The notes below the pieces were generated by a model that ran no database searches, had not been told where the DNA came from, and worked only from the letters and a program-made list of their open reading frames with translations. Positions 1 through 49,992 of a stretch of 64,000 nucleotides of DNA are shown in pieces. The position numbers and the translations under genes are program-made. The stretch is from the IMG/VR virus record IMGVR_UViG_3300011113_000805, positions 186,001 to 250,000 of that record. The stretch is one strand, 5' to 3'. Within the stretch, counting starts at the first letter, position 1. The number at the start of each line of letters is the position of its first letter.

Positions 1-171
1 GAGATATCTCTCAGTCTGAGTGTCTTCCTCCGGAGGCGGCTTGGGAGTGCCTAAACGAACATTTGCAAAGGCGTACTTCCCAAGAGGAGCATTGTGTGGG
101 GCAACCGGGGTATAGGTCTCGTCAGACTCGAGAAGAACTTGGCGAATGAGAGAGCGGAGGAGCTGGGTCAT
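1..171 (-). CDS. Leader-bearing R-S-E ADP-ribosyltransferase family protein, N-terminal part (runs off the window)
   Basis: Manual translation MTQLLRSLIRQVLLESDETYTPVAPHNAPLGKYAFANVRLGTPKPPPEEDT. It shares the leader and the PLGKYAF...PPP.E motif with the ARTs at 41930-47847. ATGA overlap with the upstream stop. Confidence 0.75.
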   Translation of the reverse strand, partial: MTQLLRSLIRQVLLESDETYTPVAPHNAPLGKYAFANVRLGTPKPPPEEDTQTERYL

Positions 172-1190
172 CTTAGTTTATATCTTAGTTTATCCTTGAG
201 ATGTTCCGGAACATCCTCCCAGTATTTGCGATCGAGGCCGTAGATAGCACCGCGCACCTGGAGATCTATTGGAAGGGAGGTGATACCTGTGCTGTGAAGG
301 ACGAGATCGCCACCCACATGGAGGCCTGTCGGGAGGGAGGTGATAGGGGTGTTGTAGAGGTTGAGATGGCCACCCACGTGGAGGCCTGTCGGGAGGGAGG
401 TGATACCTGTGTTACTGAGGTAGGTATCGCCCTTCATGATCCTCTGATCTTCCGGGAGTTGCTCGAGATGTTTCAGTGCTTTCAAGACTGCCCGTATAGG
501 ATCCCACTTCCCAGCTTCGAAGTCACCCATTGCCGAGCGACGAAGAGCCGACTGCTTCACGGGTCGACCCTCTCTGGCGCTGATATCGGGACGATCGAGA
601 GGCGCAAGAAGAGCTGCCCTGTCAACGGGTGTCCAGGATTTAGAACCAACCTGCTTCCACGCCATTGGAACCGCGGTCGTTGGGTCGTAAACGACGGCGA
701 CCCTACCATCATTCCTGCCTGTGAAGACGATACCCTTTACTTCGTGCTGGAGAGACTCATAGACGTTGTGGGCCGAGCTTGAAGTAAATTTGTTGTCCTT
801 CGGTGGTTTAACCTCCTCCAGCACCTTGATGACTGTCTCACTGTAGCCGACTTCCTGGGCTTGCCCAGCAGGTGTGAGCGGGCGCTTATAGACCTTTAGG
901 GCGATCTCAGGATCAAAGATGATGTACCCGTAGAGGTTCACTTTGAGCTTGATGACGTGGTCACCGTAGTAACCTCTTTCAGTCTTCGTATCTTTAAGGT
1001 CATAGACAGTGTAGAGACCCTTCCCGTACATTGCACCGGCACCGGTACCTGGTGTGAACTTGTCCTGCAGCAGAGCGTCGATGAGAGCCTGTGGGTCAGC
1101 TCCTGTCCCATGATAGACGACGGTCTGGGCGCCATAAACTTCTTCCAGGAGGAGGGTTTCACGAATGAAAGAGCGAAGGAGATATGACAT
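168..1190 (-). CDS. PARP/diphtheria-toxin-like ADP-ribosyltransferase with C-terminal LRR-like repeats, leader-bearing
   Basis: YHGT...GAMYGKGLYT motif, three 20-aa repeats (L.L..T.ITSLP.GLHVGG), leader MSYLLRSFIRETLLLEE. Confidence 0.65.
   Translation of the reverse strand: MSYLLRSFIRETLLLEEVYGAQTVVYHGTGADPQALIDALLQDKFTPGTGAGAMYGKGLYTVYDLKDTKTERGYYGDHVIKLKVNLYGYIIFDPEIALKVYKRPLTPAGQAQEVGYSETVIKVLEEVKPPKDNKFTSSSAHNVYESLQHEVKGIVFTGRNDGRVAVVYDPTTAVPMAWKQVGSKSWTPVDRAALLAPLDRPDISAREGRPVKQSALRRSAMGDFEAGKWDPIRAVLKALKHLEQLPEDQRIMKGDTYLSNTGITSLPTGLHVGGHLNLYNTPITSLPTGLHVGGDLVLHSTGITSLPIDLQVRGAIYGLDRKYWEDVPEHLKDKLRYKLR
250..430. repeat. 60-bp tandem repeats encoding LRR-like units
   Basis: gccacccac(a/g)tggaggcctgtcgggagggaggtgata recurs with a 60-bp period. 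Confidence 0.8.
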
Positions 1191-1199
1191 AAAGGCTAT

Positions 1200-3062
1200 T
1201 TATTCATCATTTGAAGAAAGATTAGCCACTCCTAGAATTTTTGCCTTACGAGGTGCCGGATCTGCCGCAAACCAAGTTTCGAGTGTTGAGCGCAATTCTT
1301 CACCACCTGAGAGCGCAAACATTCTAGGATTTCGAATGATTTCGTTGTAGTCACTATCTTCAAGTGCAGCCAGTCCCTTTTTGTACCCAATGTCCCACTT
1401 TTTGACGTCCTTAGTCTTTTGAGACCAGGCCTCAAAATCCTCGTTTGTATAGAAAGCAATTCTTTCACTGCCTTTCTGTACAACAACAAGAGGTGTCATG
1501 ACTCGACAAATGCGACCTTGTGTAAAGAGCTCAGGCCAATACTTGCCAAAGAAGTTTATCAAAAGACCAGCAATGGAATCACCATCAGGATCGGCATCGG
1601 AGTAGATAAGGACCTTGCCATAGCGGAGTTCCTTAGGTTCCTCACCCATTTTCAGGCCAATTGCAGTGAGGAGATCTTTCACTTCTTGATTTTGAATAAC
1701 ACGTGTATTTGCAAGCTCCATTACATTGATAAACTTGCCTCGAAGTGGAAATGCTCCTTGTGTATTGGAATCACGAAATTTTCTAAATGCTGAGGAAGCT
1801 GAGTCTCCCTCGAAGAGACTAAGGGTGCAGTTCTCTCGATCCTTTCCCTTAGCATCGATGAGTTTCAGAACTTTTCCTTTGCCTACCTGCTTGTTGAGCT
1901 CACGAAGCTGCTTCCTTTCATCAGCAAGGGCTTTCTGTTGTGCCCAGTCCAAAATTCGCTGAACGACTTCGGATGCGAGAATGGCCTTAAGAGTCTTTTC
2001 AGAGATCTCAAACTTCGAGCCGAATTCCTTCGAGTCGGTGATGAGTTTCTCTTTCGTCTGCGATGAGAACGCGGGATTGACGATGTCAGCCTGGACCATC
2101 ACGAAGAAGTGATTCCGCAGCTCGGAGGGTCGGAGATCGATCTTGTGTTTCTTGCGAATCTTCTCGCGAATCCACTCGACGACCTGACTCGAGACGTAGT
2201 CGACGTGGGTGCCGCCATCGCGAGTCTCGACAGAGTTCACGAAGGAGACCTGGGAGAAGGACCCTTCCGAGGGAGCGATGGCGACTTTCCAGCGATCGAC
2301 TTCCTCGTAGATGGCGCCCTCGGAGTAGAGGACGCAGTACTCCTTGAAAGAGGAGAACTTGTGAGTGACGCCGTTGAAAGTGACAGTCAGGCGCGGATTA
2401 CAGGCCGCGAGGTCAACGCAGCGCTTCCGCATAACCTCGACAGTGTCGGCGTCGATAGTCGACATTCCGAATCGCTCGAGATCGGGCTCGAAGAGGATCT
2501 CGGTGAAACCCTCCTTGCATTTGACGATCTTCGCCTCGGTGCGCTCGCGCATATTGTTGTTGAAAGTCTGCTGAAACGCGTTCTTCCTGTCAGCGGTCCT
2601 GATGCGAAACCGCTTCGAGAAAATGTTCGTGAGGGTCGACCCCACGCCGTTCGTCCCGGCGACGAGTCGCTCCTCGTCATCGTTGAAATTCGATCCCGCC
2701 TTCAGAGAAGAGAAGATCATTTCCGGGATCCACTCGTCGTACTCTGCGTGTCGAACGACAGGGATGCCGCCGTTGTCCCACACGGTCACAGTCCCGGCGT
2801 CGGGTTCCACGGTGACGCGAATTTCGTTGAGTTTCGGGTTGCGGCGGTGTTCGTCGACGCTGTTGCTGACGATCTCATCGAAAATCTTCAGGAACGCGGG
2901 GTTCACGACCACCCGTCTCTTCTCGAGGCGACCAGTATCGGCAAGAAGATAAATTTCGTCCTCTCGAATCTTAGTAGAACCAACCCACATACCCGGTCGC
3001 GACAAAACATGGTCAATATCAGATAATTTCCGATATTTTTGCTCAATGTTAGTCGATTTCAT
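1200..3062 (-). CDS. DNA topoisomerase IIA large subunit (GyrB-like ATPase + TOPRIM; T4 gp39+60-like)
   Basis: HVLSRPGMW, EIVSNSVDE, DNGGIP, GTNGVG, EGDSA, PLRGK, DADPDG and YKKGL motifs. Confidence 0.95.
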   Translation of the reverse strand: MKSTNIEQKYRKLSDIDHVLSRPGMWVGSTKIREDEIYLLADTGRLEKRRVVVNPAFLKIFDEIVSNSVDEHRRNPKLNEIRVTVEPDAGTVTVWDNGGIPVVRHAEYDEWIPEMIFSSLKAGSNFNDDEERLVAGTNGVGSTLTNIFSKRFRIRTADRKNAFQQTFNNNMRERTEAKIVKCKEGFTEILFEPDLERFGMSTIDADTVEVMRKRCVDLAACNPRLTVTFNGVTHKFSSFKEYCVLYSEGAIYEEVDRWKVAIAPSEGSFSQVSFVNSVETRDGGTHVDYVSSQVVEWIREKIRKKHKIDLRPSELRNHFFVMVQADIVNPAFSSQTKEKLITDSKEFGSKFEISEKTLKAILASEVVQRILDWAQQKALADERKQLRELNKQVGKGKVLKLIDAKGKDRENCTLSLFEGDSASSAFRKFRDSNTQGAFPLRGKFINVMELANTRVIQNQEVKDLLTAIGLKMGEEPKELRYGKVLIYSDADPDGDSIAGLLINFFGKYWPELFTQGRICRVMTPLVVVQKGSERIAFYTNEDFEAWSQKTKDVKKWDIGYKKGLAALEDSDYNEIIRNPRMFALSGGEELRSTLETWFAADPAPRKAKILGVANLSSNDE

Positions 3063-12605: not shown

Positions 12606-13892
12606 TTAACAAGCCTTAATTTCTTCACGAATAAGCAACCGAAGAAGATTCACGGCATTTCGACCCTCAGCAACAGGAGGCGGTTTTGAGCTTCCTTTAC
12701 CGTACTTAAAGATCCCTAGGATCATGTTTGCTGCCGCAAAGCTTCCTGTGAATTTATAAGCATTTCCCTTATAAATAAAGACAACTCCCTCCACAGGTGT
12801 TGTCACGTTATCAACAGATCCTAACTTTTCAAGTTGAGACTGAAGAAAACTCATCGATCCAGCATCACCGGCTGCTCTAATATTTGCGATTGCATTACTG
12901 ACTTCCTGCCGAAGACGAACAACCTCAGCGTCATTGTCATTGATAAGAGTAGACTTAAGTCCTCTTAGAAGTTCAACAGCAAATTCATTGATTGCTAATT
13001 CAATAGGCCTAACACAGGCCTTAAGAATCTTTGGTGACTCCTTGACAAAATTATTGACTCTTGTATAAACCTCAGGTGTCAAATTTTTCTTGATATCCGC
13101 CAAAGAAGGAGCACCTGGCATCTTTACACAACGTGCAATCACCATTTCTTCCATTCGTGGTTGCAGTGCCAATTGACCAATCTCGCGCTTAATGCAAGCA
13201 GCTAAATATTGTGCCATGGTTGCTGAGTCATCTAATCCTGTAGAAGACAGTGATTGATCAATTACCGATGTTACCCTATCTAGGATCCTACCATCAGAGA
13301 TGGCACGAAGCCTGGCAATTGCAGGTCCCTTTACCTGCCAAGATTTATCAGATACTGTGTCCTGCATCTGATTTACATAGCCATCAAGAATATCAACACT
13401 TCCATCAGCATCCGGGCCTGCCTCTACTTCACCACCGGAAACATTAAAAACAGGCCAACCGTGAAAGACCAAGGTGTTCTTGTCATAGTTAATGACATTA
13501 GGATTTTTCGTGTAAATGACTTCCATAGAGAACCATCGATCTCCGGATGGGCCAAAAATTCTCGTCCGTTTCTCAGGTGGGATTACACGAAGTGCCTTGG
13601 AAAGAATGCTGAATGCTGAGTCGAAAGCATCCTTAATATTGCCACGACCTTCAAATTTTGCTGCCAATTCCTCAGCATTCATTCCGCCACGTTTAATGTC
13701 ACCACCCGCTCGAGCAACTTTCACATTGCCTTGCTGCTCATCCCAGGTGAAAACAAGGTTCATGCCATCAAGCTTTTCTGTTGCAGATGTCAGTTTTCCT
13801 GACGCAGCGGCAGACAGAATGTCTTTCATCTCCCAAAAGTGAAGATCAGGATTATCATACAAATGCATCAAGTGACCAACTGCACCGCCCAT
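12606..13892 (-). CDS. Ligase-superfamily nucleotidyltransferase-like phage protein
   Basis: TEKLDG (motif I), EGVVF, YKFTG; leader-like segment at the C-terminus (LLRLLIREEI). Confidence 0.6.
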   Translation of the reverse strand: MGGAVGHLMHLYDNPDLHFWEMKDILSAAASGKLTSATEKLDGMNLVFTWDEQQGNVKVARAGGDIKRGGMNAEELAAKFEGRGNIKDAFDSAFSILSKALRVIPPEKRTRIFGPSGDRWFSMEVIYTKNPNVINYDKNTLVFHGWPVFNVSGGEVEAGPDADGSVDILDGYVNQMQDTVSDKSWQVKGPAIARLRAISDGRILDRVTSVIDQSLSSTGLDDSATMAQYLAACIKREIGQLALQPRMEEMVIARCVKMPGAPSLADIKKNLTPEVYTRVNNFVKESPKILKACVRPIELAINEFAVELLRGLKSTLINDNDAEVVRLRQEVSNAIANIRAAGDAGSMSFLQSQLEKLGSVDNVTTPVEGVVFIYKGNAYKFTGSFAAANMILGIFKYGKGSSKPPPVAEGRNAVNLLRLLIREEIKAC

Positions 13893-39577: not shown

Positions 39578-39713
39578 CTATTTTTCGGACCGCAGATGCT
39601 CCACCAGCCACTGAGCTTGAGACTTGTTGTGCTCCTCATCTCGAAGGAGGATGCAATCCTGCCTGAGGTTTCGTGTCAGCTCGACCTTGGACAGGTCGCC
39701 CACCGGCCGGGTC
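39578..39713 (-). pseudogene. Remnant Imm5-like cassette with an in-frame internal deletion
   Basis: Reads LSKVELTRNLRQDCILLRDEEH|NKSQAQWLVEHLRSEK*; start and promoter missing. Confidence 0.75.
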
Positions 39714-40131
39714 AGGCCACCCTCTTCGATCCGCCCTTCTTGGGGGCAACCGGGCCGCGGAAGACCAGGGTGTTGACCACTCCCAAGTACCCGATCGGCT
39801 CCCCCTCAGCAGCCTTCTGCATCGCCTCGGAGGCTACCTCGTCGAGGCCTTCGGACCCTGGCACGGAGAATGCCACGTCCACGTCAGAGTCGTCACGGAA
39901 CCTGTTCCTCTCAAGAACGGAGCCGATGATCCACACGGACACCTCCTCCGCTGGGAGGTCGAGGACCTCCGCGGCCAGTTCCTTGAGGGAGGGTGCGGCG
40001 CCGGCCACGGCGCGGATGGCATCCTTTCTGTACGCGTCGAGGTCGGGGTCTTGGGAGGCAAGGACCTCGTTGAGGGAATGTGTCACTTCTTCACGGATGA
40101 TAGACTTGAGCTTGGATAACTTTATCTTCAT
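39712..40131 (-). CDS. Leader-bearing minimal nucleotidyltransferase (Pol beta superfamily)
   Basis: IIGSV....F..DSDVDVA; leader MKIKLSKLKSIIREEVTHSLNE. Confidence 0.75.
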   Translation of the reverse strand: MKIKLSKLKSIIREEVTHSLNEVLASQDPDLDAYRKDAIRAVAGAAPSLKELAAEVLDLPAEEVSVWIIGSVLERNRFRDDSDVDVAFSVPGSEGLDEVASEAMQKAAEGEPIGYLGVVNTLVFRGPVAPKKGGSKRVA

Positions 40132-40220: not shown

Positions 40221-40703
40221 TTATTGACCAGACTTCAGGTGTTCCACAAACCACTGTGCCTGAGACTTGTAAGAAAGCCCACGATCCTCAGCAGACCGAG
40301 CAACATCAGCAGCAGCCTCAGCAGCGTCAGCAGCATCAACAGCAGCCCAAATAGCCTCAGCAGCAGCCCAAGCAGCCCGAGCAGCAGCCTCAGCACCAGC
40401 CCGAGCAGCAGCCTTAGCAGCGTCTTTCAACTCCTCAGAAGTGATGCTTAGCTCATCATCCAGCCACTGGTCGACCATGGTCAGAGCATGCGTCACCTTC
40501 AGGTCAGGCTCATCCACCAGTCGAGCCAGCATCTTACCAGCGCACCACCTAGCAAAGGCGACCAAGTCTCGGTGGGTGATGATGCCAATGTGCTCCCCAT
40601 CTCGAAGAAGGATGCAGTTGAGCTGGAGGTTTCGTGTCAGCTCGACCTCAGACAGAGTCGTCTGCCAGCCGGTGGCAGGATCAATCAAAACATAGTCAGG
40701 CAT
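40221..40703 (-). CDS. Imm5-like Ala-repeat cassette protein
   Basis: Family motifs. Confidence 0.8.
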   Translation of the reverse strand: MPDYVLIDPATGWQTTLSEVELTRNLQLNCILLRDGEHIGIITHRDLVAFARWCAGKMLARLVDEPDLKVTHALTMVDQWLDDELSITSEELKDAAKAAARAGAEAAARAAWAAAEAIWAAVDAADAAEAAADVARSAEDRGLSYKSQAQWFVEHLKSGQ

Positions 40704-40778: not shown

Positions 40779-41270
40779 CTATTTTTCGGACCGCAGATGC
40801 TCCACCAGCCAACGTGCTTGGGCTTCATATGAAGCAATCTCAGCAGCAATCTCGACAGCAGCCCAAGTAGCATGAGCAGCGGCCTGAGCAGCCGTGGTAG
40901 CAGCCCAAGCAGCCCGAGCAGCAGCCCAAGCAGTAGCCCGAGCAGCAGCCCGAGCAGCAGCCCCAGCATCCCAAGCATCAAAAGCAGCAGCTTCCAGCTC
41001 CTCATTGCTGACGCTCTGTTGGTCCTCCAACCACCGGTCGACCAGGATCAAGGCATACTGCGTCTCAGGAGCAGGTGTGCCCTTCACTCGAGCCAGTGTC
41101 TCAACTGCTAGCCATCGAACAAAGACAACCAGATCCCTATGGGTAACAATGCCAATATGCTCATTCTCTCGAGCAAGAATGTCATTGCTGGCTATTTTTC
41201 GTGTTAGATCATGCTCTTGTACAATTTTGTTCATTCCCGTAATGGGATTAATTAGTGTATACTCTGTCAT
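40779..41270 (-). CDS. Imm5-like Ala-repeat cassette protein
   Basis: Family motifs; preceded by TTGTAA-N18-TATAAT instead of a class A element. Confidence 0.8.
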   Translation of the reverse strand: MTEYTLINPITGMNKIVQEHDLTRKIASNDILARENEHIGIVTHRDLVVFVRWLAVETLARVKGTPAPETQYALILVDRWLEDQQSVSNEELEAAAFDAWDAGAAARAAARATAWAAARAAWAATTAAQAAAHATWAAVEIAAEIASYEAQARWLVEHLRSEK

Positions 41271-41336: not shown

Positions 41337-41933
41337 TCACTCGAACTTAATCAATCCCAAACCGGTGAGAGCATCGATGGTTGGTGTTCCTTTCTTTCTA
41401 TAAACTTTGGAAAGTGGTGATCCCTGCCACGTTTCGCCAGGCTGTAGTTTCGCATTAGATGACCTTTGAATACAGTCATCCTCTTCTATGTCAGGTGTGA
41501 TTGTGCCTGGCTTTGAATCAAGCTGTTGATAATGAACATCCGAACGATTGTCATAGTAATACTGCCATACCCTTTTTGCATCAGGTGAAATAATTTTTCT
41601 GTCAGACATCAAGCCAGCAGGACCGGCCAGCTCCATAGCTATATCATAGAGGAGTGGACCCAGCCCGCGGATTCTTGTGTCAGAAGTGTTAACTTCGTAT
41701 GCACCTAAGCAATTCCCGTAGTCTGGCATAGGACGAGCCATTGACAAGGTTCCAACTGAATTGTAGGCATCTTCGAATTTCTCAGCTATAATACGATACC
41801 CGCCTAGTCCAAATTTTGTTTTTGTTACTTTAAAATGTATTCCAAGTTCTGCAGCTTTCTTCGGGGTTAGTGCTGCCTCGACAAGAAGGGTCTCACGGAT
41901 GAGCTGTCGAAGCCTATGCTCAGTGATTCTCAT
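41337..41933 (-). CDS. Leader-bearing GNAT-like acetyltransferase
   Basis: MRITEHRLRQLIRETLLVEA; RGLGPLLYDIAME...SDR..IS..A.RVW. Confidence 0.7.
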   Translation of the reverse strand: MRITEHRLRQLIRETLLVEAALTPKKAAELGIHFKVTKTKFGLGGYRIIAEKFEDAYNSVGTLSMARPMPDYGNCLGAYEVNTSDTRIRGLGPLLYDIAMELAGPAGLMSDRKIISPDAKRVWQYYYDNRSDVHYQQLDSKPGTITPDIEEDDCIQRSSNAKLQPGETWQGSPLSKVYRKKGTPTIDALTGLGLIKFE

Positions 41934-43027
41934 GATACACTCACAATTTCCATCCAGTCGGCCCAAATTGTTCCAAGACCGATGACTTCCTTTTCACTTG
42001 AGAAGTCTTCAAATTCATCAAGGTCCACACCGTAGAAACCCTCAGCATCGAGGAATTTACCAGGATTATTCGCTTTGCTGGCAGCAAAGACTACGGCATA
42101 CAAATTCTTTCCTCTCCTATGCCTATTACGTAATGAGAATTCCTTGGCAATCTCATATGAGGATGACCATGAGGAGGAAAATCTGTCTTCAAGTGGCTTA
42201 ATCTCGAATTTCCCCTTCATCTCCTGCGTCTTGATGCTTGAATCAATTTTCGTGATATCAATCCCCATTCTTTCAAGATCATCGATGTTGAGCAACATTC
42301 CTCGATAGTAGGTACCAGAAGGAGGTTCCATGAAGATGTCTGGGTAGAGGTTGTCCTTTATAAAGCTCATGGCAAGTTGTGATTGCTGGCGAGAAAGGGA
42401 ACGTTTTCCTAAGAAGTGATTACGGATTGAACGAAGAAGGGCGTTCTCAATACTAGTGTTCTTCTCCATTGGAGGAGGACGGGCATTCATCATCTGTCTT
42501 TGCGGTGAGAATGCATACTTGCCAAGTGGGGATTCAGGTGGTGCCTTGGGCTCATATGCAGCCTCATACTCGGCAGCTCTACGACTCTCATCATCAGCTT
42601 CGCGACTTCTCTTCTCCTTTGTGATGGAGTCCGCATCCTTCCGGAGACGGTTTCCCACCCTCTTGATTCCCCTGGAAGCTCTCAGGTTCTTCCTATCATC
42701 GTTGTTGATGAACCTGACAAGCTGTCGGTAGATCCTAGCTAGGAATTTCCCGCCCGGTGTCTCTTTAAGAACGCTGTCGATGACATCATCAGGAGACTCA
42801 TTGGCACCGTAGTCGAACCTGAAACCGGGTACAGACTCCTCGATGATACCAGCAAACTCACCATATGTCGGCCATCGACCGTTGATCACCTCGAAGCTGG
42901 ATCGAATCGTGAACTTCCAATAGTCAAAGACGCCATGGATGGAGTCACCGTCAGAATAGTTGATCCTCGCCTCCGTTAGTAACGTCTCGCGGACGAGCTG
43001 TCGAAGCCTAGACTCAGTGATTCTCAT
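41930..43027 (-). CDS. Leader-bearing R-S-E ADP-ribosyltransferase with an extra N-terminal domain
   Basis: YYRG, SSSWS...A.EF, EKEVI. Confidence 0.75.
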   Translation of the reverse strand: MRITESRLRQLVRETLLTEARINYSDGDSIHGVFDYWKFTIRSSFEVINGRWPTYGEFAGIIEESVPGFRFDYGANESPDDVIDSVLKETPGGKFLARIYRQLVRFINNDDRKNLRASRGIKRVGNRLRKDADSITKEKRSREADDESRRAAEYEAAYEPKAPPESPLGKYAFSPQRQMMNARPPPMEKNTSIENALLRSIRNHFLGKRSLSRQQSQLAMSFIKDNLYPDIFMEPPSGTYYRGMLLNIDDLERMGIDITKIDSSIKTQEMKGKFEIKPLEDRFSSSWSSSYEIAKEFSLRNRHRRGKNLYAVVFAASKANNPGKFLDAEGFYGVDLDEFEDFSSEKEVIGLGTIWADWMEIVSVS

Positions 43028-43512
43028 GGCAGCTCTCCCTTGTAATAATGACTTCCTTTATCTTCCGGAAGTTCACTGAGATCTCGTCTCTCACCCTCTC
43101 GGAAGCCAGCAGCAATAAAGGCTCTTTGCGACTCTTTGTTTATATCTGCAATCCAAACCCTTGCTGGTAAATGCGAAGGATCGTTAAAGAACTCACTGAT
43201 TGCCTTTCTTGCATAGCCTTTGCCTCTTGCCGATGGATCGACGTAAATTGCCCCAGCACGCCAATAGCCTCTATCAAATCTAGGAGTCATAAATCCTACA
43301 GGGTTACCGGAATCATCAAGTATTACGAAACGCGCTGCATCCTTTTCAGGCCCCTTTACGAGGTTCAATCCGGCAAACTCAGGATGCCTGTCTGCATCAT
43401 TAAGGAGACTGTTGAGACGTTCTATGCCTTGATTACCAAGTGATGCTGGTTTAGTCAGTTCCTCCCTAATAAGCTGTCGAAGGAGCGTTTCTATGATGTG
43501 CATTCTAATCAT
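43024..43512 (-). CDS. Leader-bearing GNAT acetyltransferase
   Basis: IYVDPSARGKGYA motif A, N..SQ..F..AGF motif B. Confidence 0.85.
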   Translation of the reverse strand: MIRMHIIETLLRQLIREELTKPASLGNQGIERLNSLLNDADRHPEFAGLNLVKGPEKDAARFVILDDSGNPVGFMTPRFDRGYWRAGAIYVDPSARGKGYARKAISEFFNDPSHLPARVWIADINKESQRAFIAAGFREGERRDLSELPEDKGSHYYKGELP

Positions 43513-44029
43513 TGTCCTTAAATGATAGACTCCTGGTAACACTTGGCATTGTACTTGTCGCTTTCCTGAAAGCATTCATGTATTCTTTTGATGTTACATT
43601 GTGCCGTCTATTTTTGTAATCAGGGAAGCCTTCATCTGCCATCACCCGTTCCATATGAGACTCATCCTCACCGGCCTCCAAGCGAACCTTGTTAAGATGC
43701 TCAATTGTTCCAGTGTATGGACTATATCGACTACTAAATCCAACAAGACTCTTTGTTAGTGTTTGTGCAGGTTCCTGAATCCACTCATCATCACGTTTAA
43801 TGTATTGTTCATAAACTACCCGACCACCGTCATCAGCATTGTCATCCCGTTGCATCTCAATTACACGCGCAATCTGACCTGCATCACCCGAGAATATGAA
43901 TAAGTCTGAAAAGTGCGGTGTGAGAGTCTTTCGAGAACGCTTTAACTTAAAGTCGACTGGAACAACATCACCTTCATGGATGAGCTCTTCCCTAACAATG
44001 CGTCTTAAGATTTTTTCTGAAATTATCAT
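43505..44029 (-). CDS. Leader-bearing hypothetical protein
   Basis: MIISEKILRRIVREELIHEG. Confidence 0.7.
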   Translation of the reverse strand: MIISEKILRRIVREELIHEGDVVPVDFKLKRSRKTLTPHFSDLFIFSGDAGQIARVIEMQRDDNADDGGRVVYEQYIKRDDEWIQEPAQTLTKSLVGFSSRYSPYTGTIEHLNKVRLEAGEDESHMERVMADEGFPDYKNRRHNVTSKEYMNAFRKATSTMPSVTRSLSFKDND

Positions 44030-44062
44030 AGCTACCCTCCTCGAAAATTTATGTCACTATAT

Positions 44063-44692
44063 CTATGCATAAACGATTAGATCAAGCTCGAGCAACGCAT
44101 CAAGGGTAGATGTTTGTCCATCAGCACGTTTGTAAGCTTTAGACAAAGACGACTCAGGCCACATTTCTTCGGTACCATACATGTCATCTGACCATATTCT
44201 TGCGCTGGATTGCACACAGTCGTCTTCTGGGTCTTTTGTCCGAGGTGCCTCTATATCATCGAGTTGTTGTGACCTGATATCAGGCCTTTTGGCATGATAA
44301 TAATCCCAGACACGATGTGCGTTATGAGATACATTTACACGGTCCGAGGTAAGTGGGTCAGGATTGACAAGGTCAATCATAAGGTCATACATAAGTGGAC
44401 CAAGACCATCAATGTATACATAAGATCCATCAATTGACCAAGCACCTAAACATGGATCATTTTCCTTGTGACAAGATAAAAATCCGGCTGTGGTATTATC
44501 ATTTCGATAATATGCTCGGATTTCAATATACTCTGCCTGACGTCTATCTTTGATCTTAAATTTTATGCCTTTTCTTTGTGCATCACTTGGACTTAAAGCA
44601 GCCTCGGTTAGAAGATAAAACTCACGAATGAGTTGACGCAGTTTACGCTCTGCTAGTTTGATGTTGCATCTCAAGTTAGGGATATTTCTCAT
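44063..44692 (-). CDS. Leader-bearing GNAT-like acetyltransferase
   Basis: KLAERKLRQLIREFYLLTEA; GLGPLMYD...SDR..VS..A.RVW. Confidence 0.7.
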   Translation of the reverse strand: MRNIPNLRCNIKLAERKLRQLIREFYLLTEAALSPSDAQRKGIKFKIKDRRQAEYIEIRAYYRNDNTTAGFLSCHKENDPCLGAWSIDGSYVYIDGLGPLMYDLMIDLVNPDPLTSDRVNVSHNAHRVWDYYHAKRPDIRSQQLDDIEAPRTKDPEDDCVQSSARIWSDDMYGTEEMWPESSLSKAYKRADGQTSTLDALLELDLIVYA

Positions 44693-44842
44693 GACTATTT
44701 TCCCTTGCCTGTAGTTTGAATAGCTTTTGTTTCTCAAACGTGGGATCTGTCGCATCTGAAGTGTACTGAAGCTCTTGTGTTCTTTTCGCAAATCCCGCAA
44801 AGTCCTCAAGTAGAATTTCATGAATCAGATTTCTAATAGTGT

Positions 44843-45622
44843 TCATGTGATTCTCACAATATACATGTGATCTAGCTTGATAGATCCAATGCTAATAACT
44901 TCTTGCTCACGTGTATAAATGCCTCCTATGCCACCAATGCCATACAATGACTTAGCATCTAAAAACTTATAACGGTTATCAGCAGGTGATGCACAAAGAA
45001 TTACGTTATACAAATGCTTTGAACCTGCAGGCATAGACCAATATCCTCTATTTGCAAATTCGGTGGCAATTTTAGCGCTGATTGTCCATGAAGACACAGG
45101 GCGATTATCCTTATTTGTGATCACGGTATTGGTGTCATATCGTTCAGCAATTTTTCTCAAATCTTCTGTGGTCTCGATTTCAAATGAATCTTTTGCTTCA
45201 AGAGTCTCGACATCAGAAAACAGATTAGGTGGAAGCATTTTTCTTAATGTGTCGATTGATAGCAAAACACCTCTATAGACAACGTCTTCCTCAGGTTCCT
45301 TAAAAACGTCTGAGTATTTTCCTTTTTTCAAGAAATCAGAAACGATGTTGGCATATTCAGAATTTTTTGTAAATGATTGGCTGCTTTCCGGATCGGAGAA
45401 GTGCATATACAAAGACCAAAAGAGTTTTTGTTCGAAATCCGTATTTGGTTCTTGCGGAGGACGTGGTAGAGGTGCCGGGGGCCCTTGACGCTGTGGAGAA
45501 AAAGCGTACCTCCCTAGTGGCTCATCAGCTGTCATATTGGCAAGAGCCTTTTCGTCTGATTCACTCTCAGCCAATAGGATCTGACGTATAATATGACGAA
45601 TGTTTTTCTCACTCATCATCAT
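44843..45622 (-). CDS. Leader-bearing R-S-E ADP-ribosyltransferase
   Basis: VYRG, SSWT...A.EF, EQEVI. Confidence 0.75.
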   Translation of the reverse strand: MMMSEKNIRHIIRQILLAESESDEKALANMTADEPLGRYAFSPQRQGPPAPLPRPPQEPNTDFEQKLFWSLYMHFSDPESSQSFTKNSEYANIVSDFLKKGKYSDVFKEPEEDVVYRGVLLSIDTLRKMLPPNLFSDVETLEAKDSFEIETTEDLRKIAERYDTNTVITNKDNRPVSSWTISAKIATEFANRGYWSMPAGSKHLYNVILCASPADNRYKFLDAKSLYGIGGIGGIYTREQEVISIGSIKLDHMYIVRIT

Positions 45623-46376
45623 AAGACTCCTCCTTTATTCTGCAGGCCAAAACACTATTGACCTGAATTGTTCCTGTCCCAATGACTTCTTCTTCATAAT
45701 CATAGGAACTAATCTCTCTAAGACGATAAAGTCCTTCACAGTCTATAAATTTTCCTGGATTGTTTTCGATTTTGGCACAGAAAACAATGCAAATATCATC
45801 TTCAACTGCATTCTTTAGGGAAAATTTGACTGCTGTAGAAAGCGCTTTAGTCCAAGATGTTGTATATTTCCCACCCCTGTTTGTGATATCAATTTTCATG
45901 TTAAGCTTTTTCATTCTCTTGCCAATGGCATCAAAATCACCATCGTAATTCATGCCACCAATTGTATTGGGTATGTTGACAAAAGGAATTTTTTCAATGT
46001 CAATATTTGGCAAAACGCTCTTTATGCTTGAAGAACCTTCGAAATGAATTCCACGGTAAATTGTAGCTGCAGGTGGCTCCGCAAAGATATCAGAATAGAG
46101 GCCGACTCTAATGAATTCCTTGATTTGATTAACAGTTTCCTGAGGTATTGGCAAATTATTTCGAAAATGAGAAACTAACTGTAAACGTAAGCCCTCTTCA
46201 TCTGTCGTGTTTTGCTCATAGGGAGGTAATGGTGATCGTGCCCAATGACGATTCGATGCATCGGCAAATGCATACTTTCCAAGTGGGGCATCAATAGGTG
46301 CCTCTGGTTTGTAAGAGTCAACAGCTTCGGTCAAAAGAATATGACGTATAAGCTGTAGGATTGTGGAATCATTCAT
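45609..46376 (-). CDS. Leader-bearing R-S-E ADP-ribosyltransferase
   Basis: IYRG, TSWT...A.KF, EEEVI. Confidence 0.75.
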   Translation of the reverse strand: MNDSTILQLIRHILLTEAVDSYKPEAPIDAPLGKYAFADASNRHWARSPLPPYEQNTTDEEGLRLQLVSHFRNNLPIPQETVNQIKEFIRVGLYSDIFAEPPAATIYRGIHFEGSSSIKSVLPNIDIEKIPFVNIPNTIGGMNYDGDFDAIGKRMKKLNMKIDITNRGGKYTTSWTKALSTAVKFSLKNAVEDDICIVFCAKIENNPGKFIDCEGLYRLREISSYDYEEEVIGTGTIQVNSVLACRIKEESYDDE

Positions 46377-46401
46377 CGCATGTTTCCTTTTAATGGCTTG
46401 T

Positions 46402-47142
46402 TCATGAACTAATAATTTTCTTCGTGACAAATATCTTGTTCACTCGAATCGTATCTACGCCAATAATTTCCCGTTCATCCTTAAATGGTTCGAAATCTCG
46501 AAGCCAATACAGGGGTGACATGTCAATAAACTTTAAAGGGTTCTCTTCCACATCAGCACACAAAATAACCGCATAACCACTTTCACCTTGCGCCAAATTT
46601 AGTTTGTCTAAGTTTCGAATGGCAAATTTCTCAGCTATCTGCTTGCTTTTTGACCATGAGGACGAATATCTGGCTTCTGTATTTGTAATGTCAATATTGA
46701 CATCAATTTCTATTTCTTTGTGAGGTGGCATGTTAAGTATTTGAGATGACTCTACATCAGCCGGCATCCATTTCATCAATGAATTGCTGCTCACGGCTAT
46801 ACCTCGATGTGCTATGACAAATATTGAAGGTTCCGCAAAAATATCAGAATAGAGCCCATTACGAATGAACTCCATAATTTGATTAGCGTATTGATAAGGA
46901 AGTGCATGTTTTCCAACTTCTGTGTGCAATTGCAATGCCCCCAATAGCTTCAATTCTGCGGCATTGTTTCTTTCCCATGGTGGTTTAGGTCTTTGCAGTC
47001 TTTGGTGTAATCCACTGGGCAGATGTGTACCAGCAAATGCATATTTCCCAAGAGGTGCATCAGCAGATTCCTCAGGATCATAAGGCGTAGCAGATTCAGC
47101 CAAAAGGATTTGATGCACAAGAGAACGGAGGTACGTCTTCAT
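46402..47142 (-). CDS. Leader-bearing R-S-E ADP-ribosyltransferase
   Basis: AHRG, SSWS...A.KF, EREII; leader MKTYLRSLVHQILLAES. Confidence 0.75.
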   Translation of the reverse strand: MKTYLRSLVHQILLAESATPYDPEESADAPLGKYAFAGTHLPSGLHQRLQRPKPPWERNNAAELKLLGALQLHTEVGKHALPYQYANQIMEFIRNGLYSDIFAEPSIFVIAHRGIAVSSNSLMKWMPADVESSQILNMPPHKEIEIDVNIDITNTEARYSSSWSKSKQIAEKFAIRNLDKLNLAQGESGYAVILCADVEENPLKFIDMSPLYWLRDFEPFKDEREIIGVDTIRVNKIFVTKKIISS

Positions 47143-47847
47143 TTAGACGACCCTTCTTACCGTAACAGCACTTGCTCGAATAGGTCCCAGACCGATCACT
47201 TCACTCTCAGATCGAAATTCTTCTTCAAAGTCAGCATCGAAATTGAGAATATAAAGTGGTTCTGCATCAATAAATCTGCCAGGGTTATCTACCGATTGCG
47301 CCTCAAAAACGACTGAATACATAGGGCCCCATCGGGATTTATGCTTCTCGGAAAACACGGATGCATCAATGGATGAGAATCTATCAGTCACACTTCTTAT
47401 CTGCGACCAAGACGATGCAAACCTATCCTTAAGCGGGGCAATGAGATAATTGCCGGTTCCTTTCCATGTCTCACCAACATCTAATGATGGCAGGTCAGGA
47501 ACCATGCTCAATAGTTCGGGTGTGATTAGGCGCATTCCACGATAACAAGTTCCTTCAAAAGGATGAAAGACATCTTTGTAGATGCCTTTCTTAACAAAGT
47601 CAACGATTGCTTCACCATAAGCTTTCGTAAGAGGTCTCATTCCAAAAAAATGATCACGAATTGCACGTAAAAATGCACTTTCCTTAGGATTGTTTTTCTC
47701 TAAAGGAGGTGGTTTCTGAATGCCTTGTCTCTGGGGTGAGAATGCATATTTGTCAAGAAGGGATCCCGCAGGAGCAGCTTCAATGTCACTCTCTAGAGAC
47801 TCACATAAGATCTCCTTTATCAAAAGCCTTAAATCTCTTTCATTCAT
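47143..47847 (-). CDS. Leader-bearing R-S-E ADP-ribosyltransferase
   Basis: CYRG, SSWS, ESEVI. Confidence 0.75.
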   Translation of the reverse strand: MNERDLRLLIKEILCESLESDIEAAPAGSLLDKYAFSPQRQGIQKPPPLEKNNPKESAFLRAIRDHFFGMRPLTKAYGEAIVDFVKKGIYKDVFHPFEGTCYRGMRLITPELLSMVPDLPSLDVGETWKGTGNYLIAPLKDRFASSWSQIRSVTDRFSSIDASVFSEKHKSRWGPMYSVVFEAQSVDNPGRFIDAEPLYILNFDADFEEEFRSESEVIGLGPIRASAVTVRRVV

Positions 47848-48089
47848 TATTGAACTATGCATATGCAACAACCCTTAGGCTTTACTATTTAGGTGGTGGC
47901 ATGCAAAGCATTTAAAGATTGTGCCGAATGTAAATTATCCGGAAATTCTACTACAAATGGCACATGAGTATTCGGTGGAACCAATCACAGGAATGATAGC
48001 ATTCCACCCGCACTTATCACAATATTCCAAAGAACGCTGTTGCAAAAGAAGGTACTGCTTAAGCAATTGCTTGTACTTTTTCTTCCACT

Positions 48090-48597: not shown

Positions 48598-48867
48598 CTA
48601 AATGTTCTTTAGCAATTTCCTTGCTTCAGCGGAAGTTTGAAAACTTCCAACTGGTGTATCGACATATCCATAAACTGCCAGGATTTCCCCTCGCTTAGCG
48701 TAATGTGTAAGAGTCTTATTCTTTACACGATAAATAACACCATCTATCGAGTAGATCCCATCAGCTTTGGTTTTTGCCTTTTCGGCAAGTTTATCACGAA
48801 TTTTATCTTCCTTAAGAAGATTCTCAACTTCTTCCTTAACTAAAGTTCTTAGTACAGATTCATTCAT
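48598..48867 (-). CDS. Leader-bearing small basic protein
   Basis: MNESVLRTLVKEEVENLLKED; GAGG RBS. Confidence 0.65.
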   Translation of the reverse strand: MNESVLRTLVKEEVENLLKEDKIRDKLAEKAKTKADGIYSIDGVIYRVKNKTLTHYAKRGEILAVYGYVDTPVGSFQTSAEARKLLKNI

Positions 48868-49068
48868 GTGCTTACCTCTCTCTGCATTATACTTATCATC
48901 ATCAGGATTTATAAGGGGCGAAGCTCGTGAAGTGGAATGTATAGGATCTTCCCGTCGACGAGAGTCGGGAATCGTGTGGTCGACCATGATGGGATGGGTC
49001 CCACGATCATGCCGATCTGTGGTGGTCCGGAAGAGTAGTATCCGCCGTGATCGATGATCTCGGCGAGG

Positions 49069-49278: not shown

Positions 49279-49549
49279 CGATCACCTCCACATTAGCCTC
49301 GTCCACCCAGACCCAGCGAGGTAAACCGTCGATCAGGAGGAGGGCAGCGTCCACGGACGGCTCGTTGGCGGCGGGAAGGGCGGAGGCGGTGGCTCGTAGA
49401 CGGGCACTGGGGAAGTCGGCGGCGGAGTCCAAGATGAGGCAGATCCGACCTGGGCTCTTGTCCCAGCCTCTGCCATCATACCAGAAGAGCTGGGATTTGA
49501 TTTGAAGCAGGCCGCCCTTGTGGGCTTGAAGGGTCTCAAGAAGGGTCAT
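49265..49549 (-). CDS. SH3-like protein, W..RGWD subfamily
   Basis: LFWYDGRGWD...RICLILD...LLIDG.PRW. Confidence 0.7.
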   Translation of the reverse strand: MTLLETLQAHKGGLLQIKSQLFWYDGRGWDKSPGRICLILDSAADFPSARLRATASALPAANEPSVDAALLLIDGLPRWVWVDEANVEVIDEAG

Positions 49550-49940
49550 GTCCCATCCCTGCGAGGCACCCCTTCAACCAAGAAAGCCATTCCGTTTCGC
49601 ACCCGATGTGATCCGCTGGATTGATGATCGATGGGAATCCGGCCGACTGAAGGGTGGCCAGCATCTCCTCACGGACACCCTCGAGGCCTGTGGTGGAGGT
49701 GATGATGACAGGAGTCCCGGAATACCACTCTTCAGCGACCCAGCGTGCCCACATCCTTCCGTCCTGATGAGGCATATCGTGATCGAGAAGGATCCCATCG
49801 AACTGTGTGCGGCCTTCGAGGATGAATGTTTCAGCAAACTCCGGGTCGCAGGTGATGATCCACCGGTGCTTCTCCCGGTCCAGCATTTGGGTGAACTCGT
49901 CATAGCGGGATGGACAATCATCGATGATAAGAAAACGCAT
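49536..49940 (-). CDS. Stand-alone receiver-domain protein (LDHD type, cyclic-phosphate-processing-like)
   Basis: FLIIDD...R, LLDHDM, DG. Confidence 0.65.
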   Translation of the reverse strand: MRFLIIDDCPSRYDEFTQMLDREKHRWIITCDPEFAETFILEGRTQFDGILLDHDMPHQDGRMWARWVAEEWYSGTPVIITSTTGLEGVREEMLATLQSAGFPSIINPADHIGCETEWLSWLKGCLAGMGHDPS

Positions 49941-49992
49941 GTTAGGTCCTTTGTGTTTTACTATACCACATGGGCGGATGGGTTGCATAGGT

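Follow-up and report, generated by a model that had tools for sequence, protein, structure and literature searches.

The window of DNA analysed here, 64,000 nucleotides corresponding to bases 186001-250000 of the 257,178-bp linear IMG/VR virus record IMGVR_UViG_3300011113_000805, contains an array of five paralogous genes which are predicted to encode ADP-ribosyltransferases (ARTs) and which all start with a common N-terminal leader. The leader is a statistically real N-terminal signal. It ties the putative ARTs to approximately 20 unrelated neighbouring proteins, GNAT acetyltransferases among them, and to a T4-type protease, and this organising principle of the array was absent from the first-pass annotation of the sequence. 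We consider it probable that the array encodes active mono-ARTs of the R-S-E class that would be delivered by the capsid and would work like the T4 protein Alt, within a hotspot of leader-tagged cargo genes. Positions are those of the window; the prefix G000 designates coordinates of the whole record.

Five Paralogous Genes in the Array

The five genes, called A-1 to A-5, are on the minus strand. Gene A-1 (41930-43027) encodes 365 amino acids, with the leader in codons 1-19 (42971-43027), the motifs YRG, SSWS and EKEVI, and an N-terminal extension of approximately 130 residues without assignment between the leader and the ART domain. A-2 (44843-45622, 259 amino acids, leader at 45566-45622) carries YRG, SSWT and EQEVI, and A-3 (45609-46379, 255 amino acids, leader at 46329-46379) carries YRG, TSWT and EEEVI. 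The mechanical open reading frame (ORF) of A-3 extends to a TTG at 46430; the orthologues P0001-P0003 begin at the methionine encoded by the ATG at 46379. A-4 (46402-47142, 246 amino acids, leader at 47095-47142), with SSWS and EREII, is the protein that was modelled. Its motif codons are located at 46804-46806 (R113), 46657-46659 (S162), 46474-46476 (E223) and 46468-46470 (E225). A-5 (47143-47847, leader at 47800-47847), with YRG, SSWS and ESEVI, encodes 234 amino acids from the most likely start, the ATG at 47847, the mechanical ORF reaching 47871. Orthologues of A-1, A-2 and A-5 are P0022, P0019 and P0017, respectively.

The five ORFs were thus found at the positions previously claimed for them, with the claimed R-G, S-W and E-x-E motifs. 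YRG or HRG was present in all five, and the invariant columns of the alignment were R242-G243, S286-W287 and E345/E347. The proteins were 33-41% identical in pairs, with E values of 1e-16 to 1e-58 in an all-versus-all BLASTP comparison. A profile built from the five matched them at E 1e-95 to 1e-105 (7e-100 for A-1, 5e-102 for A-2 and 2e-95 for A-5). The paralogy of the array genes is far beyond chance. The description of the array as near-tandem holds for the presence of the five paralogues and fails for their contiguity, as four other genes intervene between positions 43024 and 44846. A profile search of the whole record retrieved ten copies of this family, hereafter family A: the five of the array, four at G000:180357-186171 and one at G000:253088-254098, which bears out the notion of an expanded family.

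Predicted Fold and Relation to Known ADP-Ribosyltransferases

The AlphaFold2 model of A-4 had a predicted local distance difference test score (pLDDT) of 84 and a predicted template modelling score of 0.78. In this model R113, in the [YH]-R-G motif, was part of the predicted strand 110-118, S162-W163 belonged to the core strand 161-164, which was followed by the helix 167-180, and E223-x-E225 stood at the start of the predicted strand 225-228. A Foldseek search of the PDB with this model produced a list dominated by ART toxins (best E 0.02), and the VIA second-look alignment of the top PDB matches gave Z values of 4.8-7.7, with ARTs throughout. In a scan of 48,161 PDB chains that was independent of Foldseek, nearly all of the top 50 matches belonged to the ART superfamily, with Z values of 3.3-7.1. 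They included KptA (7.1), Vis (6.9), TreX (5.7) and pertussis S1 (5.6), as well as Scabin, Arr, PltA, HopU1, C3, iota-like toxin, Certhrax, ART2.2, SpvB, C2-I and VIP2. It is the uniformity of this list that leads to the reading as an ART fold, each Z alone being middling. The named matches in AFDB clusters, ESM Atlas and BFVD were ARTs, those in BFVD including phage head-morphogenesis and minor-capsid fusion proteins, with Alt- and ModA-type entries lower down. The structural comparison proposed by the first-pass annotation yielded a model resembling ARTs, with VIP2 in the top 50 and Alt- and ModA-type proteins among the lower BFVD matches.

A profile of 107 family sequences aligned with T4 ModB in hhalign with a probability of 76% (P 2.3e-5), collinearly over 147 columns, the ModB template being a single sequence. 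The motifs were in register: YRG with LYRGI, SSWT with DSFTT, and ExEVI with EQEWMI. Eighty ORFs of the same genome, used as background, scored 21.0 at best, versus 37.6 for ModB. The probability for T4 ModA was 9%. By this comparison ModB and ModA appear to be the nearest characterised relatives of the family, and the alignment suggests a possible distant relationship that falls short of established membership. PF03496 (ADPrib_exo_Tox, the family of Alt, C3, VIP2 and iota) matched none of the five proteins and none of the 107 family members at E up to 1, and the Pfam search of the 107 members returned scattered chance matches only, with no ART family. Fold and motifs together place the family, with good in silico support, in the R-S-E (cholera-toxin-like) clade of the ART superfamily and outside PF03496. 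The earlier assignment to ARTs is in this way supported by fold and profile, that is by the AlphaFold2 model, the structural scans and the ModB alignment, with the motifs in the expected structural elements.

Family Size, Conservation and Age of the Paralogues

An exhaustive hidden Markov model (HMM) search of 1.84 billion representatives retrieved 1,015 clusters, defined at 50% identity, with an E value limit of 1e-3, and 695 with a limit of 1e-10. A tblastn search of 50,697 GenBank phage records with three family members found no match, and a search for related loci with a 10-sequence alignment gave a single IMG/VR contig with one copy. Conservation was estimated from 165 metagenome domains. 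The arginine was present in 165 of the 165, the serine in 95%, the tryptophan in 100%, the first glutamate in 96% (glutamine in six) and the second glutamate in 99%. The segment PLGxYAF...R...P-x-E-x-N-T-x-x-E was as conserved as the catalytic motifs (F 96%, R 97%, both E 99%), and its distal part aligned with the E-x-x-T-x-x-E helix of ModA and ModB. The motif PLGKYAF...PPP.E.N, which had been called private to the paralogues of this DNA, is a feature of the entire family. Some family members possess two or three ART domains per protein, or long N-terminal extensions, and in another T4-like phage one triple-domain member is flanked by the genes for gp13 and gp15.

A maximum-likelihood tree joined every array gene to an orthologue of its own in other contigs, the stems measuring approximately 1 to 1.3 substitutions per site, and placed A-1 and A-5 with sequences of other phages and not with A-2 to A-4. 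Because the paralogues pair with their own orthologues on long stems, the array is old and maintained and does not result from a recent burst of duplication. The strong divergence noted earlier between the motifs was observed again, in the form of variable, indel-rich stretches between the R and S strands, beyond the helix next to S-W, and immediately ahead of E-x-E. The substrate-recognition loops of R-S-E ARTs lie in these stretches. The divergence of the loops would fit different targets for the paralogues.

A Common N-Terminal Leader

The leader is an amphipathic segment of 16-19 residues with the consensus M-x(2-8)-[LI]R-x-[LI][IV]R[EQ]-x-LL-x-E (core LRxLIRExLLxE). It is carried by the ten family A proteins, by six or seven proteins of a second family (family B, described below), by the GNAT acetyltransferase encoded at 43024-43503, by two genes of a GNAT-like family (family C) in the array block and by several small ORFs. 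A 16-mer HMM of the leader, run on the record translated in all six frames, had 35 matches scoring 8 bits or more (19 of them had served as seeds of the HMM, the others being independent), and zero in the reversed and residue-shuffled controls. Nearly all matches began 2-10 residues after a methionine and all except one were on the coding strand. The tripeptide [LI]xE was present within the first 30 residues in 30 of 31 leaders versus 32% of the other ORFs, and mostly ended at residue 14-20. Among 147 representatives of the family in other metagenomes, 17-23 begin with a leader of the same type, and many more with looser variants. The leader-coding DNA was 82-90% identical between some neighbouring genes, and we hypothesise that it may act as a recombination handle.

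A prohead protease of the Peptidase_S77 family (T4 gp21-type), above the Pfam cut-off, is encoded at G000:88364-90076 on the minus strand. Two small leader-bearing proteins are encoded directly downstream of it, where the core proteins are found in T4. The protease ORF, of 570 codons, has two Peptidase_S77 halves approximately 350 residues apart, which may reflect an insertion or a fusion, and a thymidylate synthase PHROG matched its N-terminal part weakly (E 3e-4).

Two further occurrences of leader-like sequences were recorded. The sequence NLLRLLIREEIKAC is situated at the C-terminal end of an ORF, not at its N-terminus (12630-12650, G000 ~198647, minus strand). Residues 19-33 of T4 ModA (VRASIREELLSEG; gene at L027:1409-2011, minus strand) resemble the leader consensus, which may be due to chance or may be a relic of shared ancestry.

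Cargo Exchange between Related Populations

A 9.3-kb contig from an independent study was collinear with the window over 43506-47871, at approximately 97% identity, and in it the GNAT gene was replaced by 461 other bases (run X3; 43006-43506). Another freshwater run skipped 43140-44058. A set of contigs from an RNA library, which may derive from DNA, skipped 43020-44686 and 46596-47141, the latter removing the 5' three-quarters of A-4. In a metagenome contig from NCBI (L034, GCA_006365115.1 VFQT010001607.1) the order A-5, A-4, A-3, A-2 and small ORF was kept, a 49-codon ORF occupying the site of the 56-codon one. There an extra gene of 331 codons followed the small ORF (L034 9656-10651), and a 150-codon GNAT-like gene (L034 12466-12918) was found in place of the 365-codon A-1, with the same leader, MRITEYRLRQLVRET. 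Related populations thus exchange cargo behind a retained leader. A backward joint (1094) in the read comparison was not retained as a tandem duplication, as it is best accounted for by the near-identical leader-coding DNA of a neighbour located just outside the compared stretch.

An assembly artefact is ruled out as the source of the array by the collinear 9.3-kb contig and by the same gene order in the NCBI contig.

Copies with Leucine-Rich Repeats and a Second Family

The five family A copies outside the array have C-terminal leucine-rich repeats (LRRs) made of units of approximately 22 residues (ITSLPxGLxVxGxLxL), and end with a common tail. In the tree they formed one well-supported clade, separate from and younger than the array genes. 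One of them is located at the edge of the window, where its N-terminal 57 codons (1-171, minus strand) include the leader and PLGKYAF...PPPEED. The whole gene (G000:185170-186171, 333 codons) shows successively the leader, PLGKYAF, the ART domain, the LRRs and the tail YWxNVPEHLKDKLR. The first-pass annotation had counted this partial ORF as a sixth member of the array; it is a true relative, which belongs to the distinct LRR-fused subclade.

The next gene (168-1190, minus strand, 340 amino acids) encodes a leader-bearing protein of family B, in which a second ART-fold domain, tentatively of the H-Y-E type, is followed by the same LRR tail. Other copies were found at G000:815-2011, 181405-182730, 254095-255360, 255357-256475 and 256472-257173, with a partial one at the start of the contig, so that the family counts six or seven genes. 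The conserved domain contains VVYHGT...YGKGLY. One of five AlphaFold2 models was confident (pLDDT 78), and its best structural matches, at Z values of 5.2-6.5, were ART folds of the H-Y-E class: MbcT (6.5), diphtheria toxin (5.7), cholix toxin, tankyrases and PARPs. The expected catalytic position lacked a glutamate, the sequence there being D-G-R-x-x-x-V-Y-D. We tentatively interpret family B as having an ART fold of the H-Y-E class, similar to diphtheria toxin, PARP and MbcT. If this reading is right, the record would hold 16-17 ART-fold genes. An hhalign comparison of families A and B was not significant, and the two ART-fold families are therefore not close relatives.

The ART-LRR genes and the family B-LRR genes alternate in two clusters, at G000:180357-187190 and G000:253088-257173. 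The shared tail YWxNVPEHLKDKLR might be a second processing or docking signal. T4 Alt is processed at its C-terminus too (PMC9026906).

Organisation of the Block and Neighbouring Genes

Read on the minus strand from 48867 to 39712, the block is composed of a small leader protein, a 152-codon ORF without leader, A-5, A-4, A-3 and A-2, then the 56-codon leader ORF, a family C gene, a 174-codon leader protein, the GNAT gene and A-1, and finally a second family C gene, two genes of another family (family D) and another leader protein. Adjacent genes touch or overlap; the junctions at 41930-41933 and 44843-44846 consist of ATGA. The block was treated as co-transcribed because the genes are tightly packed, several with ATGA overlaps of start and stop. 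Scans of the block for promoters and terminators remained at background level, with no enrichment.

The neighbours of the ART genes are, like them, on the minus strand. The small ORF at 44676-44846 (56 amino acids) has a leader of 18.6 bits and an ATG that overlaps the stop of A-2. The GNAT acetyltransferase inside the array (43024-43503; PF00583, E 1e-6) and the 174-residue protein encoded at 43505-44029, which had no informative match, both carry the leader. This is the case as well for two small proteins close to the ends of the block, encoded at 48598-48867 (89 amino acids) and 39712-40131 (approximately 139 amino acids, leader of 15.7 bits). For the former (ORF 48598-48987) the Thoeris inhibitor Tad4 came up in Pfam below the threshold, without significance (E 0.077).

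Family C is represented in the block by two GNAT-like, leader-bearing genes. The ATG of the one at 41337-41933 overlaps the stop of A-1, and its product resembled, with a template modelling score of 0.63, a cluster in which 15% of the members have PF00583; the other, at 44063-44692, likely starts at the ATG at 44692. Five copies exist in the record, the three others being at G000:200439-201149, 241999-242733 and 250972-251616, and at least three copies have the leader. The two window copies had no Pfam match. In ESM Atlas the family adjoins GNAT acetyltransferase clusters, with feature scores of 0.93-0.94. Family D comprises 13 paralogues of approximately 160-180 amino acids between 17954 and 41270 (for example 40221-40703 and 40779-41270), with alanine-rich C-terminal tails that derive from DNA repeats with a period of 9 or 12 nucleotides. 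Two copies were scanned, and neither had a leader or a Pfam match. The family is located in and beside a stretch of the genome with a guanine-cytosine content of 50-56%, most of the rest being at 41-49%. The region is flanked by the genes for a type II topoisomerase subunit (1200-3062, minus strand) and for a stand-alone response-regulator receiver domain protein (49536-49988, minus strand; PF00072, E 5e-7, at the cut-off).

The Source Phage

CheckV rated the record 76% complete, and its genes include those for a major capsid protein of the gp23 type, a portal of the gp20 type and a large terminase of the gp17 type. The capsid protein shared only 30-48% identity with its counterparts in Microcystis phage Mel-JY01, Flavobacterium phage immuto, uncultured huge phages and cyanophages. 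As these closest matches are so far away, the source phage is a distant T4-like jumbo myovirus. Metagenomes from a dozen studies, covering lakes, reservoirs, rivers and drinking water, contained the array DNA, which therefore belongs to a widespread freshwater phage and not to a one-off assembly.

Discussion

We propose that each ART is made with an N-terminal leader through which it would attach to the prohead's scaffolding core. Cleavage by the gp21-type protease after an L/I-x-E site would then remove the leader, and the processed enzymes would be carried in the head, enter the host with the DNA and ADP-ribosylate host proteins when infection begins, as does T4 Alt. In T4, gp21 cuts after L/I-X-E, and the internal proteins, like Alt, are directed to the core of the prohead by propeptides of 10-20 residues (7 in Alt) (PMC9026906, PMC5694885). 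The internal proteins of T-even phages have the leader alone in common, and their genes occupy a polymorphic hotspot (PMC3012670, PMC12373910). We infer capsid targeting, cleavage and injection because the leader, the [LI]xE tripeptide and the gp21-type protease match these descriptions. The array would be one part of a hotspot of leader-tagged cargo (ARTs, GNATs and small proteins) in which populations swap cargo. The paralogues keep the catalytic residues and differ in the loops between them, and LRR domains are present in the second cluster, for which reason they probably have different host targets.

Several observations weigh against this model of capsid-delivered ARTs. The five array proteins had no Pfam, PHROG or NCBIfam match, searches of PDB sequences with the 5-sequence and the 107-sequence profiles retrieved no ART, and hhalign gave no meaningful alignment with T4 Alt (score 17). 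No single structural match reached a Z value of 8, the Foldseek E values against the PDB were 0.02 or weaker, the link to ModB depends on a single-sequence template at 76% probability, and the serine motif, S-W-[ST], is a variant form of the classical one, S-T-S. Compared with the T4 capsid targeting sequence the leader is longer and differs in sequence, T4 is the source of the cleavage specificity assumed for this protease, and [LI]xE is a common tripeptide. In addition the nearest relatives, ModA and ModB, are not packaged proteins. The silence of the domain libraries is uninformative, because in control searches Pfam also failed on the established ARTs ModA and ModB, T4 Alt matching PF03496 at 5.8e-36.

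The early, non-virion nature of ModB and ModA, the nearest profile relatives, leads to an alternative in which the array proteins would be active ARTs made after infection and left unpackaged. The N-terminal helix would then serve for oligomerisation or partner docking, or would reflect a translation-initiation region kept by gene conversion. The leader-like residues 19-33 of ModA point in this direction, and conversion is plausible given the identity, up to 82-90%, of leader-coding DNA between some neighbours. We nevertheless regard this alternative as unlikely. The leader occupies the extreme N-terminus of approximately 30 otherwise unrelated proteins and ends in a T4-type cleavage tripeptide, and two small proteins in scaffold position beside the protease carry it. 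It is kept when cargo is swapped, as are the capsid targeting sequences of T-even phages (PMC3012670, PMC12373910). A rather improbable proposal is that these enzymes use nicotinamide adenine dinucleotide (NAD) without acting on arginines of host proteins, by ADP-ribosylating DNA or RNA, by attaching RNA chains as ModB does, or by consuming or modifying NAD-derived immune signals to counter host defence. Many NAD-centred counter-defence enzymes have been described in jumbo phages (PMC7824862). Q-x-E replaces E-x-E in six family members, and the top folds include the nucleic-acid-directed Tpt1/KptA and Scabin, with DarT at a lower rank. The matches to KptA, however, span only about 90 residues against 132-135 for Vis, an R-S-E enzyme, and the LRR fusions of the sister clade suggest protein partners. 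The R/S/E-x-E triad with both glutamates is moreover the signature of arginine-directed protein ARTs.

The similarity of the fold to the Rhs and type VI secretion system ART toxins TreX, TreTu and Tre1, and the existence of swappable cassettes behind a constant N-terminal part, could evoke polymorphic toxins, directed against competitors or used for superinfection exclusion, with immunity genes nearby. This seems very improbable: the constant part measures just 16-19 residues, the Pfam scans of the five proteins and 107 family members detected no Rhs, MuF, PAAR or secretion domains, and no regular pairing of toxin and immunity genes was visible, the four right-hand paralogues abutting without partner genes. 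We give still less credit to the idea that the proteins are catalytically dead internal head proteins which keep the ART fold alone. Pseudo-ART domains do exist, and the TASOR pseudo-PARP was among the weak Foldseek matches, but the R, S-W and E-x-E residues are conserved at nearly 100% over some 150 clusters that lie more than one substitution per site apart.

The proposal of leader-tagged, capsid-delivered ARTs can be compared with several known systems. With ModB and ModA the array family shares a catalytic part of approximately 200 residues, the R, S and ExE motifs in register, the upstream E-x-x-T-x-x-E helix common to both, the absence of detection by Pfam, and an origin in T4-type phages with adjacent paralogues. 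It differs from them by the additional conserved PLGxYAF...R segment, by S-W-[ST] in place of S-x-[ST], by the leader, by the number of copies (10 versus 2) and by the fusion of some copies to LRRs, and the similarity is marginal (76% for ModB, 9% for ModA). As with Alt, these are putative ARTs of a T4-type phage that has a gp21-type protease, with an N-terminal propeptide ending in L/I-x-E (Alt begins with MELITE; PMC9026906), and they would be injected with the DNA and would modify host proteins. In contrast to Alt, which has 682 residues and a large N-terminal part, they show no detectable sequence relation to it, and their packaging is presumed. The T-even internal proteins Ip1-3 offer a parallel for the genetic organisation, being unrelated cargoes that share a short leader only and are clustered in a hotspot that varies between related phages (PMC3012670, PMC12373910). 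The leader of the present phage is different in sequence and somewhat longer (16-19 residues), its cargoes are mostly predicted enzymes (ARTs and GNATs) instead of small inhibitors of restriction endonucleases, and leader-bearing genes number approximately 30 per genome versus three in T4.

Host-modifying ART and GNAT domains and delivery by the capsid, the latter presumed here, are known from injected polyvalent proteins (PMC7824862), and the BFVD matches to head-morphogenesis and minor-capsid fusion proteins recall the MuF fusions. Unlike both, the genes described here are stand-alone and have a short leader. The copies of the sister clade pair a putative enzymatic domain with short LRRs of bacterial type, as do the type III effectors SspH2/IpaH, XopAC and XopL. 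These matches were weak (E 2e-4 and worse, far under the cut-offs), domain order and enzyme differ, the delivery would be by the phage head and not by a secretion system, and the five array copies are without LRRs.

A wider version of the model is put forward tentatively, as a possibility. This phage group would possess a capsid-delivered effector system of approximately 30 genes per genome under one cleavable leader, with a breadth comparable to that of the repertoire of a bacterial secretion system. Its members would include the 16-17 ART-fold enzymes, from two clades that are unrelated (R-S-E and H-Y-E, many with LRRs), and several acetyltransferases. The leader would be a portable address for the exchange of cargo between phages, and the paralogues would each disable a distinct host protein or variant of a defence as the DNA enters.

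Phage ARTs such as Alt, ModA and ModB, and capsid targeting sequences, are part of the textbook biology of T4. The presence of multiple ARTs in jumbo phages and of injected ART or GNAT domains has already been described (PMC7824862). The novelty lies in a large putative ART family of approximately 1,000 clusters that is invisible to domain libraries and to a three-query tblastn search of deposited phage genomes, and of which ten copies exist in a single genome, in addition to six or seven genes of a second, tentative ART-fold family. It lies also in natural cargo swaps behind a sequence tag that joins these predicted enzymes to many other genes, and which could be used to list, from the sequence alone, candidate injected proteins of uncultured T4-like phages. 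If the leader is a capsid address, it would open a direct way to learn what is delivered into the hosts of abundant freshwater phages, and the diverged set of ARTs would be one whose targets may point to mechanisms of host takeover or of anti-defence.

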